The translations under genes were made by a program, and so were the position numbers. DNA of 64,000 nt from Calcarisporiella thermophila CBS 279.70 (lineage: Eukaryota; Fungi; Calcarisporiellomycota): contig NW_027192191.1 of NCBI RefSeq assembly GCF_041956535.1, positions 659,328-723,327 on the forward strand, written 5' to 3'. The notes beneath the pieces are model-generated. The model was not told the origin of the DNA. It saw only the letters and a program-made list of their open reading frames with translations, and searched no databases. Positions within the stretch are counted from its first letter, which is position 1. Every line of letters begins with the position of its first letter. This document shows positions 3,162 through 64,000 of this stretch, one piece after another.

Positions 3162-6100
3162 TTAAGACGTTATAGAGATAAAACAGATTTCAGTATGATT
3201 TGTCTTCTGGCGTGGGTGGTAGGGTGTCCACGTCTGGGTTTTGACCCCACCGCCGGATGACTTCAAGGATTTTGGTTTGGTTCACTATATCAGGCCACAA
3301 TGATTAGCACACCTGGTATAAAGTTAGTCGATAAGACAAGGAGCATTCCTAACCTGGCTTGTGAAGACAATCCTGCATTCCAGCCTCTAAACAAGTTTGC
3401 TTGGTAGAGCTTTGGACATCTAGCAGCACGCATAATGGAGCTGGGGTTAGTGACAAGCATATCCTCGTCAAAATACTCGAAGCCTTACCAGCCGTCAAAG
3501 CAATAATCGGGACATGCCGCATGCGGGCATTGGAGTACTCCCATTTTCTTATTGCTCTCGCCGCCTCGAACCCATCGAGGTGGGGCATATGGCAGTCCAT
3601 GAGGATTACGGAGATATCGCTTGCCGACCTAAAAAGTGAAGTCAAGCCACAGGTTAATCCATGCATTGATGAGCTAGCCAGAGGGGCCTGGGGCTAAAGC
3701 AAAGCTGCCAAATCTACCTTTGGAACATTTTCACGGCTTCCTCACCGTCATTTGCAAGCAGAATCTTCTCAAACCCATACTTGTGGAGTTGTCGAACCAC
3801 AACTTTCTGCGCTATCGGATTGTCCTCAGCCACCAACACGGTGATGTTGGTGATGTGGGCTAGCTTTTCACTTTTACTCATGCTCTCTTCGAGTCTGAAA
3901 GTGCCCGCATTCTCGGTGTTTGCCGAAGAAGGCAACGCCTTTCGATCATACCCGGATGTCGGGTGGTCAATGTGTGAAAGAGTGGCCAGCTGAGAGGTCA
4001 TGTAGACGGCAGCCATAGCTTCATGCCGCTCCTTTTCTTTCTCCGGGCTCTTGGGATGAAAATTAAGCACCTCTAGGCCCTCTGTCAGTGTGCGCACACG
4101 AGATGCCATCAAGTCCAGGATCAACTGCCGCAGTTTGAATTCCATGGGTGGTCGCTTGATCCGTGTTGCTGTCATCCGATTACCGATGAGCCGCTCGATA
4201 GCCCGGAAATCCTCCAGTTGGCGACACCGCTTTCGCTTCATAGTGTAGGAGCGGGACATGAATAGCAAGCGTATCCGATAGAATCTCGGCTCCTTGACAA
4301 GCTCCTCGACAAGCCGGTGCATTTCCTCAAAGACATTGTAGTCAAGGATCAGTATATGGGGGAGGGCCTCATCGCTCGCCGCTCGGAGAGTTTCTAAGAG
4401 CTTCTGCGTGCTCTCCGGAACATCAAGAGTGAGAGGGAAGAGTTTAGCTTGGTACATGGCGACCTTATTTTGACTTTCTGCCAGCAGCATCACCCGAACC
4501 GGCGGCAAATCTATCATTGGCACTTCAAGGTTGCTATTTTCGGCAATTTCAAGCTTAACCGTGAACCAGAACAAACTTCCTTTGCCCTTGCTGCTCCGCA
4601 CCCCAATATCTCCTTGCATAAGCTGAGTCAGCTCGCGACAAATGCTCAGGCCCAACCCCGTGCCTCCATACATGCGGGTGGTGGAGCCGTCCACCTGTGA
4701 GAATGGTCGGAAGAGGTTCAGCTGCTCCTCGTGAGACATTCCAATGCCCGTGTCTTGGATCTCAAACTTCACAACAATGTGCTTCGAGTCCTTCTCCATC
4801 GGGATGCATCGCACGAAGACCTCCCCGTTATGGGTAAATTTGATCCCATTGCCGACCAAGTTCATGAGGATTTGGCGGAGCCGACCCACGTCACCAATGA
4901 GCACCCGGGGCAACAGTGCGTCCACAAAGCAATTTAGCTCGACATCTTTGTCGTGAGCTAATGAGGAAAGCAGATGGCACACATCGCCCAGTAGTGACAC
5001 AGTCGAGAATGCCGTGTACTCGAGCTTCACCTTCTTGGCCTCCAACTTGCTGTAGTCTAGCAGCGAATCGATAATTCGTAGCAACATGTGGCAAGACTGC
5101 TGACATGTATCGACATACTCGCGCTGGATAGGATCCAGTATGGTGTCGGCCAGCAAATTCACCATGCCCAATACGCCGCTGAAGGGGGTCCTTAGTTCGT
5201 GGCTCATATTAGCCAAGAACTGGCTCTTCATTCTCATGGATTCCAACGCGGCTTCTCGAGTTCTGATCAGCTCCTCGACCATGTTCTTACGATCGGTAAT
5301 ATCCATCACGAAGCCCATCACGTTATGCAGGCTCCCCTCTTCGCTGTTGGGTATTCGCGCCAGCCCGGCCTGAACCCAGACCTTTTTCCCATTAGGCATG
5401 AGGCAGCACTTCTCGTAGGGATTGCATTCGCCCGACCTCTCCATCTCCTTGATGGCATGAATATCGAGCTCGCGATGCTCAGGAATGGTATGGTTTTGCC
5501 ACAGGACTGGGTAATTGTTGATAAGTTCTTCCCTTTTGAGCCCGGTGAGCTTGAAATAGGTTTCATTTGCTTCGTAAATGCTTCCATTTCTATTCGCAAA
5601 GAAGATGCCAGCCAGATTACTCTCGAAGAGCCGACGGAATCGGGATTCGGACTTGATGAGTCTCCCGTAAATTTCCTTGTCTTCCCGGGCCTTCTTTTGG
5701 TCCTCTACATCGGTGCAAGTTCCGATCCAGTGAACAACGCTTTCATCGGCGCTATCAAATATGGGCATGACCCGATAGATATGCCAGCGGTAGATTCCGT
5801 CCTTTCGCTTAATCCTTAGCTCGGTGGTCATGATATTGTAGGCGAGAGAAGGTTCTTTCCAATACTCCAAGAGGCTCTTATGGTCATCGGGGTGGAACAG
5901 AGGTATCCAATTCCAGTCGAGGATTTCCTCTGGCTTCACGCCTGCGTATGTCTCCCACTGTGCATTAGCAAAGGTGAATTTTCCATCCGGGGACGCGGTG
6001 AATACGAGCTGGGGCATAAGCTCGAGCAAAGCACGATATTTTTGCTCCTTACGCTCTGCTTCAGCGCGCGCCACCTGCTCACGCTTCAACATTTCGCTCT

Positions 6101-59746: not shown

Positions 59747-61854
59747 TAAGGGTAACTGGTAGCTTGAAGTGAGTGAATAAGAAATTAATGAAGAAATAGC
59801 AGGAGGGTATATCGTAGGATCTACTAAAAAAGGGGGAACTTCTGGCGGTGTTGAGCTAAATTAGAAAAATTATGCTGGTGGCAATATTTATCCAAGTTCT
59901 ATAATTGGAACAACACGTGGCTGAGGTTTCTCTCAGTCTTATTCTCATTGTGGCTAAGGTACTCAATAAACCGAACAAACAGTTGTCGTTAAGAGTAATC
60001 TCTGAGAAAGTAGAATACACATCAATATATTGCTAGATATTGGCTTCACAAAACTAAAACAAAAAATCAAATAATAGTATATCAGCGGAGGATGAATTTT
60101 TTAGATATCATTCCTATTTACAAGCACCTTAATACTCAGCTTTTTAATATTTTGGTGAAAAATCTTTAAAGCTTGGAAAATAGCTATGAAAAATAACTGT
60201 CTCTTTTCTACCTTGTATTAGTATAAAATATTATTGATATACTTTAAGAGATGAAAGATAAGAGAATAAAGAATAACATCTTAATTTCTTTAGTAAGTAT
60301 TTAAGTTAACGTGGCACATCTCTTTTACGCGGACACGAAAATATTTGGTAGGTCTTCATATGCTCACAGTATTACTTGTATACTGTCGAAGAAATTTCCT
60401 AAGTCGGAAATGGTCCGATAAACTCCGGGCACCTTTAGTTGCTAATGATTCTCCAGAGATATTGGTACCAATTTTAAATGAATCATCACGACCTTTTCAA
60501 GTTCGCATAAATTTAAATAAACATTCATTACAAAGATAAATTACTTTATTATATAGCGAGTTACGCATGTGGATCCCAAATTAAAATATTCGTAATATTA
60601 TCCGCATCATTAATAAATATTGTATTGCTTCATTCCATAATACCTAGGTTAATCCACTTCGATCCAACCTGACACATCGTTGCTACTACATATAATATCG
60701 ACATACACTATAATTCGAATTACTCTAATGTAATTATGATAATTAAACTAAAAAAAATCCATAAAAATAGAGATAACTGGTAAAATATTAAATCAATGAA
60801 AAAAATCGGTTTATATACTGCAAAAAATAATAAAGAGTGCTGATTAAAAATGGCCACTGCGTATAATTTACTCGATGTCAATTTTTGCTCCACACACATG
60901 AACTTGCTGAGTTATTTAGGATATAATTTAACGAAAAAATAAGCTATGGTGGGGGAGGAGGACTTTGATGGGATTATTTTTGGATGTAACTACAAGCTAT
61001 AATGGATAATGGTCCGCTTCACTTGGAATGAAGGCGCTCGAATTTAAAAAGTAAACTTCACTGTGTAAAAGCTTTGACCAATCAATTTTTCCAATCCTTC
61101 TGTCTAATTCTTTGCAGAATCAAATTTTAACGATGGTGTTACATTGCCTAACTATATTATTACTTGGAGAAGTAGAATCCAAAAGATATAGTAAATTTGC
61201 AGGATCAGATAGTTTTATTAAAAATACTATTCACCTCGCATTTATGGATAGTTTTGTAAAGAAATATCAATTAAGTGAAAAGACATACTGAGACTCCAAT
61301 ACCTTTATATTATCTATAATTCAATATTGCATATATAAAATCTAAGAATAAAGTTATTATCAAAGTAGTCGCTGAAATAAGAAAATCTGAAACTAATGAA
61401 TACAAAAAGTATGCAATGTTATACGGAAAGTCAGTCTTTTTGTTCTTTGAGATTTTCGTGAATTGGTTTATATTTCTTGAATTCCAAATGTGCAGGTTAT
61501 TTTACCACATTGTAGTTTCTCATATACCTGGCTATGACTCGGTATTGATACTATTTACACTACATGAGAAGAAATATAATTAGCGCACTGATTATACTCT
61601 ATAAATCCCAAAACAAAGTGTAAGTATCCACGAGTATATATCATATTTGTGGGTATACAAAGTTTTTGTTCTAGTGAAAAAAATTATAACTTAAAATGAA
61701 AGATATAAAATAATCTTATGGTATAAGCAAATTATACCATTGATCAAACTTCAATCTTAGACTAGATAGGTAGGTGGAGAGATGATCAATGTTTTCGAGA
61801 ATTTTGAACTAACACTTATTATTGCAATTCCAAGATATAGTTATATATAAAAAT

Positions 61855-64000
61855 ATGCAGTTCACGATAACGAGAACCGAACTCGCTCTGAATTTTTCGT
61901 CAATTGCATGCGCGGTTCTAATGATGATACTTGTTGTTTGGCTTCGATACATGCAACCACAAGTAACAAGGAGCATATCATTTAAGCTCAGTTTTTGGAT
62001 TGGCCTTGCCGATGCACTTTTTCGTAGTTTTTATGTCATTCGTATGGCTACCGATTTTTTAGATGCAATTCTGCCTTATGATATCTGGTTTTGCCGTATT
62101 CTCCTCTGGTCTTTCATTTTCTTTCCTATGTGGTTTTCTTTACTCACAGTCAGCATCGCTTTCGACCTCCAACTCTCAGCTTTCCACAAACACATTAATA
62201 TTGCTCGGTATCAAAAGTGGTATCTTCCGATATCCACTCTTGTCCCATTCATATTGTCAACCCCTTACCTTTTCTATGGCAATGCTTGGTGGGATGAACA
62301 CAAAGTAACTACTGAGTTTTTATTTTATTCCATTATCAACTTAATACGGTTAACGCTAAACTATATTCTAATTTCATAGAAATTTATAAACACAGATTGG
62401 CCCTCTGATGTTAACATAGCTTGGATAGTATTGTTCAACATCGTTGTATTCAGCGGAATTCTCTATTCTTTCACTGTTATTGTTATCTGCGCAAAAATGG
62501 TTTTCCGCATTGTTTTAGATTCAAAGCGGAAAAGGTTTCGACGTACCGACCAAAATCGCAATAGAGACCGCCTTGTGATGATGTCTATAATAAGGCTCCT
62601 AGGGTATCCACTAGTACTCATTGTAATAATGCCATCCGAATGTATACTTACAATTCTCTTTGCGGTTAATGCTCGCTATACGCCGATTGGAGAATCAACG
62701 GCACGAGCAAAAGCGATATTGTCTGGGATGCAAGGTATCCTTAGCTTTATCATTTTTCTCTTCAACCCATCCCTCTCGGCAGCACTTGGAGAATTTTTCT
62801 TCTCAAAAAATCGGAAAAATTCGCACTCTAAATCGCAGAGTATATCAAATGCATCCACAAGATTCCATGGTGCCGATACATTGCTCCATTTGGAATTGGG
62901 AGTAGGGAGAAATTCCGGCATTAGAAGGGACCAACATATAGAAGAGGTGTCTTTAGCTAAGTCTTTTCGACGCGTTAAATTCTTAAATACCAAAGGACAG
63001 CAATGCAGTAATGAACGTTTAACAAAAGATACTAGAGTTCAGTTGCAGAAAAAACCTTCAATTACACTTAAATCCCGTCAGTATAAACCAGTTTTTTCTC
63101 CATCAGACATCCCAGATCAACAGTTCAATAGCAATGGAAACAAATGGATTTTGGGGAGACGATTTTGTGATGCCAAAGGTAAGTTGTGCATCGAATTTTA
63201 TGAATGAAAATAAGTAATTTCAAATTTATAACAGAGATACACTACATTTTGCCAAATGATGAGGAGGAGATAGACCGATTAATTAATTTACATTATTTTC
63301 TTCGGTAAGCGTTCCCGTTCCGACCATTAAAAAAATACCTAAATTCACTAGTACTTTCTTGTATAGACTTATTTTTAATAATTGCAATTTCCTTTCTCCT
63401 GTACAAACTATTTTAAAAAATGGAGCTATGGTACTGGACGTTGGGTAAGTATCTCAATTGAATTGCGCCCAATTGCTTTTCACCTATTGGCTTATATTAG
63501 ATGCGGGCCTGGAGCATGAACAATGGAGATGGCTACAGTGTATCCAAGTAGCCACTTTTACGGAATAGACATATGCGAAATGTATCCATCGCACATTGTC
63601 CCTGAAAACTGTTGGTTTCAAACTGTGAATGTTCTCATAGGTTTACCATTTTCGGATGAAAGCTTCGAATTTATATACATACGACACATGAGTTTAGGGA
63701 TATTTCAAAGAGAATGGCCTGGAGTTCTTGGGGAAATACTTAGAGTATTGAAACCTAAAGGGTACTTAGAAATAGTTGACACAGGTAAGAGCACATCTCA
63801 GGATTGACTAACATTACAATACGCGCTTTATTTTGTAATAATAACACCTAAGCTACTACAGACTATAATATCCAAGGAGAAGGTCCAGCACTTAGGAAGA
63901 TCACAGATGGACGTAAGTACAGATGTATATATCACAATATAAAGAGGTAAATATAGATCACTTTTATTCATTGCAGTTTATAATACATTGTGTGCACGTG
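61855..64000 (+). CDS. 7TM GPCR-like (Git3/cAMP-receptor-like) domain fused to a LaeA/TAM-type SAM methyltransferase; in-frame TGA at 63517; runs off the window
   Basis: Exons 61855-62304, 62380-63178, 63235-63304, 63367-63444, 63501-63784 and further. Seven hydrophobic helices (SIAFD, RLLGYP, QGILSFIIFLFNP), then GRRF..YILPNDEEEIDRL, VLDVGCGPGA*, GID, LPFSDESF, RVLKPKGYLEIVD. Confidence 0.75.

Follow-up and report, generated by a model that had tools for sequence, protein, structure and literature searches.

A Calcarisporiella thermophila gene family that joins a GPCR-like seven-transmembrane domain to a class I methyltransferase, and a probably disabled copy

The window analysed here is a 64,000-nucleotide stretch of the genome of Calcarisporiella thermophila CBS 279.70, a thermophilic fungus. 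Direct reading of the sequence showed that its end carries a seven-exon gene on the + strand, which starts with an ATG at 61855 and has its 3′ end beyond the window. Exon 1 (61855..62304, 150 codons), defined from the open reading frame, its translation and its hydropathy, contains the start ATG and TM1 to TM4 of a seven-transmembrane (7TM) domain and shares 64-74% identity with its counterpart in the paralogs. Intron 1 (62305..62379; gtaact...atag, phase 0) lies within extracellular loop 2; the exons that flank it form a gapless alignment to residues 1-153 and 153-412 of paralog P0001, and the basal paralog P0008 lacks this intron. Exon 2 (62380-63178) then encodes TM5 to TM7, a basic linker and KWILGRRFCDAK, all in one frame: its first part (62380..62790) contains TM5, a strongly basic intracellular loop 3, TM6 (LGYPLVL) and TM7 (FLFNP), its middle (62791..63141) is a basic Ser/Thr-rich linker with neither a stop nor a Met, and its end (63142..63178) encodes the methyltransferase (MT) N-terminal motif KWILGRRFCDAK and the first base of a split codon. 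An earlier note on this DNA had described a receptor frame that runs through a basic linker into the MT motif, and direct reading of exon 2 bears out that continuity.

Intron 2 (63179..63234; gtaagt...acag) is the phase-1 GT-AG intron that had been proposed; its position is shared with the genes of P0008 and of the standalone MT P0023, and were it retained, the frame would stop at 63205-63207. Downstream of it the sequence reads HYILPNDEEEIDRL. Exon 3 (63235..63304), which reads (E)IHYILPNDEEEIDRL and in full (E)IHYILPNDEEEIDRLINLHYFL(R), is 75-100% identical to exon 3 of the paralogs. After intron 3 (63305-63366), exon 4 (63367..63444) closes with ...NFLSPVQTILKNGAMVLDVG, where VLDVG is the start of the SAM-binding motif I, and after intron 4 (63445-63500), exon 5 (63501..63784) reads CGPGA, then a stop, then the Rossmann core through RVLKPKGYLEIVDT; the motifs VLDVG, CGPG and RVLKPKG are present in exons 4 and 5 as claimed, the last of them within exon 5. 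Intron 5 (63785-63861), exon 6 (63862..63912; (D)YNIQGEGPALRKITDG), where the P0023 gene likewise has an exon boundary, and intron 6 (63913-63976) lead to the start of exon 7 (63977..64000), which encodes the MT C-terminal half, runs past the window to a TAA at 3846-3848 of locus L001 (window-equivalent 64345-64347) and is 56-60% identical to exon 7 of the paralogs. The window gene was searched as single exons, and the whole-protein searches and folds reported below are those of paralog proteins; splicing and a fused mRNA of the family genes are predicted from homology and gene models, a search for RNA sequencing runs having listed none.

The stop in exon 5 is an in-frame TGA (63517-63519, + strand) that sits between GCGPGA and TMEMATVYP in the translation and replaces the Trp of GCGPGTW, which is invariant in an alignment of 32 family sequences and is encoded by TGG in five paralogs. 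The receptor frame had been read through the whole MT domain, and this codon was overlooked; both domains do share one frame in the gene structure of the family, but the window copy is cut at 63517. Paralog P0008 terminates on TGA, so TGA is a stop in the C. thermophila genome, and translation of the window copy would accordingly break off downstream of motif I, at codon 472 of 700. A variant code in which TGA is read as Trp is ruled out by the TGA terminator of P0008 and by the TGG of the paralogs at the site, and the one alternative acceptor identified by eye that would bypass the TGA (63535-63536) leads to a stop within four codons. As it reads, the window copy could yield no more than a long-tailed receptor that lacks an MT.

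Several observations bear on the nature of the 7TM part. Hydropathy peaks were found for it in the window gene, and an AF2 model of residues 1-330 of paralog P0009 (pLDDT 84, pTM 0.81 for the 7TM part) has seven long helices and a helix 8, and its extracellular loop 2 forms a beta-hairpin. The top 50 Foldseek matches of this part in the PDB were all class A GPCRs (probability 1.0, E 9e-6 to 4e-5, TM 0.51-0.66), and its structural atlas matches to 7tm_1 clusters had TM values of 0.74-0.80; as modeled, the 7TM part has a class-A-GPCR-like fold. The predicted topology is that of seven TM helices with the N-terminus outside and the C-terminus inside, the K+R counts being 2, 3 and 9 in the predicted inner loops, with the tail also enriched, versus 1, 2 and 3 in the outer loops. 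This distribution of basic residues would place the enzyme on the cytosolic side. Profile searches, which the earlier note had proposed for both halves, matched the MT families, whereas Git3, Dicty_CAR and the other GPCR models stayed below threshold. No curated GPCR family (7tm_1, Dicty_CAR, Git3 and others) rose above the Pfam threshold with the window exons, the best match being 7tm_1 with exon 2 (E 0.095, 12.6 bits; cutoff 30.5); the 7TM part gave no family above threshold in ten family members either, although E values of up to 10 were allowed. The canonical E/DRY of TM3 and NPxxY of TM7 are absent, with only the D, N and P retained: TM3 ends in FDLQLS and TM7 reads FLFNPSLSAAL. The YP (TM6) and NP (TM7) columns are invariant across the family alignment.

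Pfam searches with exon 5 of the window gene returned Methyltransf_11 and Methyltransf_25 (E 1.4e-6), which are class I methyltransferase families; the MT parts of the paralogs matched Methyltransf_25 at E 1e-15 to 1e-17, and the domains matched within the family were Methyltransf_25, _23, _11 and _31. Foldseek matches of the MT model (pLDDT 90.5) were SAM methyltransferases, the best of them 3mgg (E 8e-16), and the structural neighbours included small-molecule and phosphoethanolamine methyltransferases, while a PDB sequence search with the domain returned generic class I methyltransferases only. The Rossmann fold, motif I and the Pfam matches are those of a class I SAM-dependent MT, interrupted after motif I in the window copy. 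The window and its fused and standalone relatives carry the signature GRx(Y/F)...(Y)xLPxDxxExxRL...H upstream of motif I; the W, R, R and F of the MT N-terminal motif are invariant in fused and standalone members, and the motif is also found in Mucoromycota homologues. The MT of the fused family retains all family-invariant residues, and pN in the MT exons is 0.21-0.32 versus a pS of 0.68-0.92. We take the GRx(Y/F)...LPxDxxExxRL signature to be a mark of LaeA-like enzymes; no LaeA-named protein was among the matches of the MT family searches, and the sole full-length matches in Ascomycota were the unnamed methyltransferases P0161 and P0163 (E 1e-42 to 1e-47). The MT part appears to belong to a Mucoromycota clade marked by GRR(F/Y)...LPNDxxExDRL. 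Prediction of a complex between the 7TM and MT domains gave a score of 0.02, which is evidence neither way.

The linker between the two parts comprises 131 aa in the window copy, with 25 K+R and 11 D+E, and is Met-free after TM7. It is correct, as had been claimed, that the MT could not start independently in the receptor frame of this copy, there being no Met between TM7 and the MT motif; however, the Met-free linker is not a feature of the family, because paralogs carry a Met there. The open frame goes beyond what chance would give: by arithmetic from the local base composition, the chance of 131 stop-free linker codons is approximately 1e-4, and the same open frame is found in at least three further diverged paralogs. 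In an alignment of four paralogs, which are saturated at synonymous sites and in which the linker is stop-free, pN (0.32-0.47) is lower than pS (0.55-0.80) in all pairs, dN/dS is 0.35-0.42 where calculable, and SKSQSISNAST, RVKF and VFSPSDIPD form conserved islands. These values indicate that the linker evolves as coding sequence under purifying selection. It is predicted to be disordered after residue 300 of the AF2 model of P0009 (residues 1-330), where pLDDT is below 50.

Approximately 12 loci of the C. thermophila genome share the 7TM-linker-MT arrangement. Homologues with both domains together, the existence of which the earlier note had made a test of its reading, were found in four NCBI models from this species (674-764 aa, each annotated as an "uncharacterized protein"), with the MT Pfam domains at approximately residues 430-560. 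In P0008, one of these four, the initial Met, the 7TM domain, the linker and GRRFCDEQG are encoded within 414 aa of a single exon; in the window and in the paralogs, one exon and one frame carry both TM5 to TM7 and the MT N-terminal motif, and there are paralogs with the exon structure and open exon 2 of the window gene. At several family loci the NCBI models are partial or MT-only (P0004, P0024, P0036 and P0039), which indicates that the annotation pipeline did not always see the fusion. At the family level, the two-domain architecture appears to be a real, inherited gene structure. No fused 7TM-MT homologue was found outside C. thermophila, and so far the fused family seems to be restricted to this species. 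As a gene architecture, the proposed receptor with a built-in MT stands for the family but not for the window copy, which has a nonsense codon at the invariant Trp.

In the MT tree, the fused MTs and P0023 form a clade with 100/100 support; the fused MTs fall on one side of a branch in 92% of bootstrap trees, and P0023 is placed outside all of them with weak support (90/37). This topology supports a single putative fusion event. In the 7TM tree, fused and receptor-only members are interleaved, with six to seven changes needed, suggesting that the MT part was lost repeatedly. The fusion may have arisen once, in an event that linked a 7TM gene at its 3′ end to a P0023-like MT gene at its upstream exons and left all of the downstream MT introns in place; intron positions are common to the fused genes and to the standalone P0023 gene. 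The fused gene would then have expanded by tandem duplication to approximately 12 loci, and repeated loss of the enzyme part would have given rise to the receptor-only paralogs. The window copy would be on this loss path, the codon for the invariant Trp that follows motif I having changed from TGG to TGA.

We consider it likely that the family is built from a 7TM domain and a class I MT with a linker of 110-130 aa between them that is basic, Ser-rich and disordered, that it stems from a single fusion, that the window copy is broken, and that in the intact paralogs the 7TM domain holds the enzyme at the membrane. The most likely working of these paralogs is that the 7TM domain would keep the enzyme at the membrane surface in place of a lipid anchor, with regulation by the state of the receptor or by phosphorylation of the tail possible in addition. 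It is quite conceivable, if somewhat short of probable, that the 7TM domain does nothing else, merely replacing an N-myristoyl anchor and siting the enzyme at a particular membrane, with no sensing. The standalone relatives start with a myristoylation-like MG(N/H/I)xxS that is followed by a long disordered N-terminal region, with MGxxxS-type starts in P0023, P0037, P0062, P0028, P0029 and P0031 from C. thermophila and other Mucoromycota; the linker of the fused proteins is similarly long and flexible, and the small-molecule and phosphoethanolamine MT neighbours are compatible with a substrate at the membrane surface. However, a 7TM GPCR fold would be an expensive anchor, its TM6 and TM7 hallmarks do not vary across the family, and the myristoylation of the standalone relatives is itself predicted from a sequence pattern.

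As regards the window copy, it is probably a decaying gene, unless the TGA base is an assembly error. That the window gene is an intact fusion of 700 codons, and its TGA at 63517 the product of an assembly or sequencing error or else a polymorphism of the strain, seems to us unlikely, although worth serious attention. The TGA is the sole disabling lesion seen in this copy, where GT-AG is kept in six of six introns and the remaining exons are open; a one-base change from TGG to TGA suffices; and exon 5 is not accelerated relative to the outgroup paralogs, the MT exons as a whole being just mildly accelerated. In contrast, protein libraries that include the paralogs lack the window protein, their best match being only 45% identical, as expected if annotators saw a broken frame, and exon 7 is somewhat more diverged than that of the sister copy (pN 0.28-0.32 versus 0.23-0.26). 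Furthermore, gene death is common in the family, since the loci L004 and L006 are clearly broken.

The earlier note had envisaged a one-component route from ligand to methylation; on this reading, a ligand would alter the cytosolic face of the 7TM domain and directly switch the tethered MT, without G proteins. We find this reading doubtful, and likewise think it rather improbable that the intact paralogs are ligand-gated MTs that would turn an outside signal into methylation of a membrane-proximal substrate within one protein at the cytosolic face. To our knowledge, a one-protein route from outside signal to methylation has been described for no GPCR. The GPCR fold, with the beta-hairpin in extracellular loop 2 and helix 8, is consistent with ligand control, as are the retention of all family-invariant residues by the MT and the maintenance of both domains together, under purifying selection, across old paralogs; direct control of the fused catalytic domain is also one model for the oomycete GPCR-bigrams (PMC6033456). 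However, a long linker that is predicted to be disordered suits tethering more than allosteric coupling, receptors have persisted while the MT part was repeatedly lost, and the window copy itself has no MT output. Given the myristoylation-like start of the standalone relatives, a simple membrane anchor is at least as likely as ligand-to-methylation signalling. Least credible of all, and in our view very unlikely, is that two genes have been misread as one, the receptor ending at 63205-63207 by intron retention and the MT starting independently: the NCBI model of the closest paralog (P0039; C32) is MT-only and begins at an ATG of the +1 frame close to where exon 2 ends, but this model omits the invariant HYILPND...DRL exon, an independent start at the +1-frame ATG of the window (63134) is ruled out by a stop in exon 3, W..GRRF lies in the receptor frame and exon at every locus examined, the linker is stop-free in the four synonymously saturated paralogs, and four full-length fused models exist.

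GPCR-enzyme fusions are rare, and the fused enzymes in the described cases are lipid kinases, cyclases, phosphodiesterases and protein kinases. With an MT as output, receptor-enzyme fusions would gain a chemistry new to them, and would gain it in fungi. The only name under which the fused proteins are deposited is "uncharacterized protein", and Pfam does not detect their receptor half. One genome offers a natural experiment that comprises intact fusions, decaying copies, derivatives that are receptors alone and a standalone enzyme whose start resembles that of a lipid-anchored protein, and the contribution of the receptor to the enzyme is therefore directly testable. The window alone is more modest, a probably disabled copy.

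No description of a GPCR-methyltransferase fusion was found in the literature, in agreement with the earlier view that this architecture had not been reported; the nearest system is NHMT. The GPCR-bigrams of oomycetes and other protists join a GPCR to PIPK, INPP, AC, PDE or TKL domains (PMC6033456, PMC5784254). Like the fused family, they carry an N-terminal GPCR-type 7TM domain and a C-terminal, presumably cytosolic, catalytic domain in one polypeptide, they coexist with standalone versions of the same enzyme, and their mode of action is unknown. The fused family differs in that its catalytic partner is a SAM methyltransferase, which is outside the PIPK, INPP, AC, PDE and TKL types (the word "methyltransferase" occurs 0 times in PMC6033456), and in that it has so far been found in one species only, a fungus (Mucoromycota).

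NHMT (AN4663) of Aspergillus nidulans is a 7TM-anchored N-terminal histidine methyltransferase (bioRxiv 10.1101/2022.10.03.510680); like the fused family, it is fungal and has seven TM helices joined to a Rossmann-type SAM methyltransferase domain. Its authors report that the 7TM domain resembles GPCRs in neither structure nor sequence and is confined to Pezizomycotina, and they term the soluble MT part an ectodomain, the protein being located in the ER and acting on secreted LPMOs (bioRxiv 10.1101/2022.10.03.510680). In contrast, the fused family has a class-A-GPCR-like 7TM domain, a predicted cytosolic enzyme and an MT from a different, Mucoromycota-wide clade. As modeled, it would not be of the NHMT type, which combines a non-GPCR 7TM domain, an MT ectodomain and residence in the ER.

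Two further comparisons are with relatives of each half. The standalone Mucoromycota MTs with GRR(Y/F)...LPNDxxExDRL, the group that the earlier note had called LaeA/TAM-like, include P0023 and homologues from Glomeromycotina and Mucorales, to which the fused MT part is 48-65% and 30-40% identical, respectively. They have the same invariant residues, and the P0023 gene has the same intron positions; however, they are approximately 300-450 aa long, up to approximately 580 aa in some Mucorales, no TM helices were seen in those whose sequences were read, and several begin with the myristoylation-like MGxxxS. The receptor-only 7TM paralogs (P0003, P0005, P0012 and others, with P0025 and P0026 of Dimargaris) have a homologous 7TM domain, with 29-50% identity, and the same YP and NP hallmarks. 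They differ from the fused proteins in having no MT part, and they are nested among the fused genes on the 7TM tree, a position that fits secondary loss.

Direct reading of the window gene, which lies on the forward strand and begins at 61855, recovered all of the sequence features described in the earlier note: a seven-helix (7TM) frame, a basic linker free of methionine, a GRRF motif and a phase-1 intron at 63179-63234. The gene has seven exons and runs past the window end. Exon 1 (61855-62304) encodes TM1 to TM4, and exon 2 (62380-63178) encodes TM5 to TM7, followed by a 131-aa linker (25 K+R, 11 D+E, no Met) and then KWILGRRFCDAK, which the phase-1 intron joins to (E)IHYILPNDEEEIDRL at the start of exon 3 (63235-63304). 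Exons 4 (63367-63444), 5 (63501-63784) and 6 (63862-63912) follow; exon 7 starts at 63977 and ends on a TAA 347 bases past the window end (3846-3848 of genomic piece L001). All six introns are GT-AG, and the exons add up to 2103 bases, giving 701 codons with the stop counted. Within the window, which spans G000:C1:659328-723327, the GC content is approximately 0.30 at 60000-62000, upstream of the gene, and 0.38-0.47 farther upstream.

The proposal that this gene encodes a receptor fused to a methyltransferase (MT) held for its architecture and linker frame; however, an overlooked in-frame TGA at 63517-63519 in exon 5 (CGPGA-stop-TMEMATVYP) cuts the frame, so that the product as read ends at codon 471, right after motif I, and lacks the Rossmann core. 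Five paralogs have TGG at this site (GCGPGTW), and the Trp does not vary across 32 aligned sequences from the wider MT family. Because the paralog P0008 itself terminates on TGA, this codon is an ordinary stop in the Calcarisporiella thermophila genome. It is the only lesion found in the gene; exon 5 has no excess divergence, and exon 7 is only mildly more diverged from outgroup paralogs (pN 0.28-0.32) than the sister copy is (0.23-0.26). The TGA is therefore either recent or an assembly error. When the gene model was searched exon by exon, the window protein was missing from the protein libraries in which its paralogs occur, the best match being only 45% identical, which would fit the annotators having met the broken frame too. 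Within its family, the window copy has probably been disabled.

DNA and protein searches of the C. thermophila CBS 279.70 genome (PMC11393059) identified approximately 12 fused loci sharing this order and exon structure, on contigs C1, C4 (two), C10 (three), C15, C17, C25 (three) and C32, together with some 20 receptor-only loci and a few MT-only loci, many of them in tandem clusters. At three family loci (L002, L003 and L007), the exon-2 equivalents are free of stops over 256-264 codons, from TM5 to W..GR(R/K/Q)F and including the linker. Across linker pairs of the paralogs, synonymous sites were saturated (pS 0.55-0.80) and pN (0.32-0.47) was below pS in every pair, with a dN/dS of 0.35-0.42 where calculable; from the local base composition, 131 random codons would lack a stop with a chance of ~1e-4. 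The 7TM half, the linker and the MT half are all under purifying selection.

When exon 2 was searched exhaustively with HMMER against 1.84 billion representatives, three long proteins matched, P0001 (704 aa), P0008 (764 aa) and P0009 (743 aa); a word-indexed search added a fourth fused protein, P0022 (674 aa). All four are C. thermophila proteins labelled "uncharacterized protein", with the 7TM region in front and MT Pfam domains at residues ~430-560; the paralog translations match NCBI proteins with VTP21DRAFT tags exactly. In the P0008 gene, a single exon encodes 414 aa comprising the start Met, seven helices, the linker and KWVLGRRFCDEQG, followed by the same phase-1 intron, and the receptor is therefore tied to the N-terminal motif of the enzyme without any splice inference. 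Taken together, the fused loci, the open linkers, the four fused models and the P0008 exon indicate from sequence that the GPCR-like/MT fusion family is real at the level of gene structure.

Four other models (P0004, P0024, P0036 and P0039) are partial and not fused. P0039, a 260-aa MT-only NCBI model, starts at a +1-frame ATG at the receptor exon end and omits the invariant HYILPND exon; the model is probably a poor one, a mis-annotation. Its locus (L002/L011, G000:C32:1520-4025), whose aligned exons all look intact, is more closely related to the window gene than any other paralog. Two loci are clearly broken: L004 carries a stop codon together with a frameshift, and in L006 TM6 is deleted. 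Tandem clusters at G000:C25:305000-333000, C10:820000-877500 and C4:774000-787000 combine fused, receptor-only and broken copies, which is a birth-and-death pattern.

Profile searches, as suggested in the earlier note, matched the enzyme half to Methyltransf_25, _23, _11 and _31, but the 7TM half to no Pfam family. An AF2 model of P0009:1-330, built from an 18-sequence family alignment, was nevertheless confident (pLDDT 84, pTM 0.81), with seven helices, helix 8 and a beta-hairpin within extracellular loop 2. The best 50 Foldseek PDB matches were all class A GPCRs (probability 1.0, E ~1e-5, TM 0.51-0.66); in the ESM Atlas, TM scores against 7tm_1 clusters were 0.74-0.80, and the nearest clusters by sequence features were fungal "GPCR family 1 profile" and Dicty_CAR. 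YP in TM6 and NP in TM7 are among the invariant positions of the 7TM half, which lacks canonical DRY and NPxxY motifs. The search for homologues with both domains yielded the four C. thermophila proteins, whereas relatives elsewhere, in Dimargaris and one metagenome protein, were receptor only.

The enzyme half belongs to the class I SAM methyltransferases (model pLDDT 90.5), and the structures closest to it are those of small-molecule, peptide and phosphoethanolamine methyltransferases. Its LaeA/TAM-like assignment in the earlier note is putative; no LaeA-named protein was among the matches of the MT family searches. Proteins of its sequence clade, most of them ~300 aa long, occur widely across Glomeromycotina, Mucorales, Endogonales and Umbelopsis, and the fused copies retain every family-invariant MT residue. 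P0008, P0009 and the standalone C. thermophila MT P0023 share a C-terminal extension after the MT fold with a conserved PPQER..L..R.KELR, which is missing from more derived fused paralogs, the window copy included.

In the MT tree, all fused enzymes and P0023 form one clade (support 100/100); 92% of bootstrap trees place the fused enzymes to one side of a branch whose own support is only 90/37. In the 7TM tree, receptor-only and fused genes are interleaved, requiring 6-7 changes, and the window and C32 copies are sisters (99/99). Fused members branch in the same order in both trees (P0009 and P0008 basal, P0022 next, then the rest), and the introns of the P0023 gene coincide in position with window introns 2-6. 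These trees and shared introns together fit a scenario in which a 7TM gene would have fused once with upstream exons from a gene resembling P0023, followed by tandem expansion and repeated loss of the enzyme part. In the window copy, such a loss appears to be under way. The receptor-only P0003 (L005, G000:C25:320977-321926), whose tail diverges directly after TM7 and is followed by no MT exon before the next gene, groups within the fused genes in the 7TM tree and is therefore likely a case of completed MT loss. The basal P0008 gene (L009, G000:C17:32961-34823) has no intron within the 7TM region, where the window gene and the paralogs close to it carry one, in extracellular loop 2. This difference suggests that an intron was gained or lost as the family evolved.

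The N termini of standalone homologues from C. thermophila (P0023, P0037 and P0062) and from Mucorales and Umbelopsis (P0028, P0029 and P0031) read MG(N/H/I)xxS, followed by a long disordered or low-complexity region. This motif resembles an N-myristoylation signal, so membrane association of the ancestral enzyme probably predates the fusion; the motif also suggests that the whole clade may work at a membrane. By the positive-inside rule, the fused enzyme would be cytosolic. Direct ligand gating of the tethered enzyme is possible but unsupported; we favor a reading in which the 7TM domain would replace the putative myristoyl anchor and position the enzyme at the membrane, where receptor state and a conserved Ser/Thr cluster after helix 8 may act as regulators.

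We found no description of a GPCR-methyltransferase fusion in the literature. The NHMT protein of Aspergillus likewise combines 7TM and methyltransferase regions in one protein; however, its authors describe the 7TM fold as non-GPCR, the protein as ER resident and the enzyme as an ectodomain. The oomycete GPCR-bigrams have the same layout as the C. thermophila family but carry other enzymes, methyltransferase being absent from the listed types (PMC6033456). The fused C. thermophila family, with its methyltransferase and a putative role in signalling, is a new variant of receptor-enzyme fusions.
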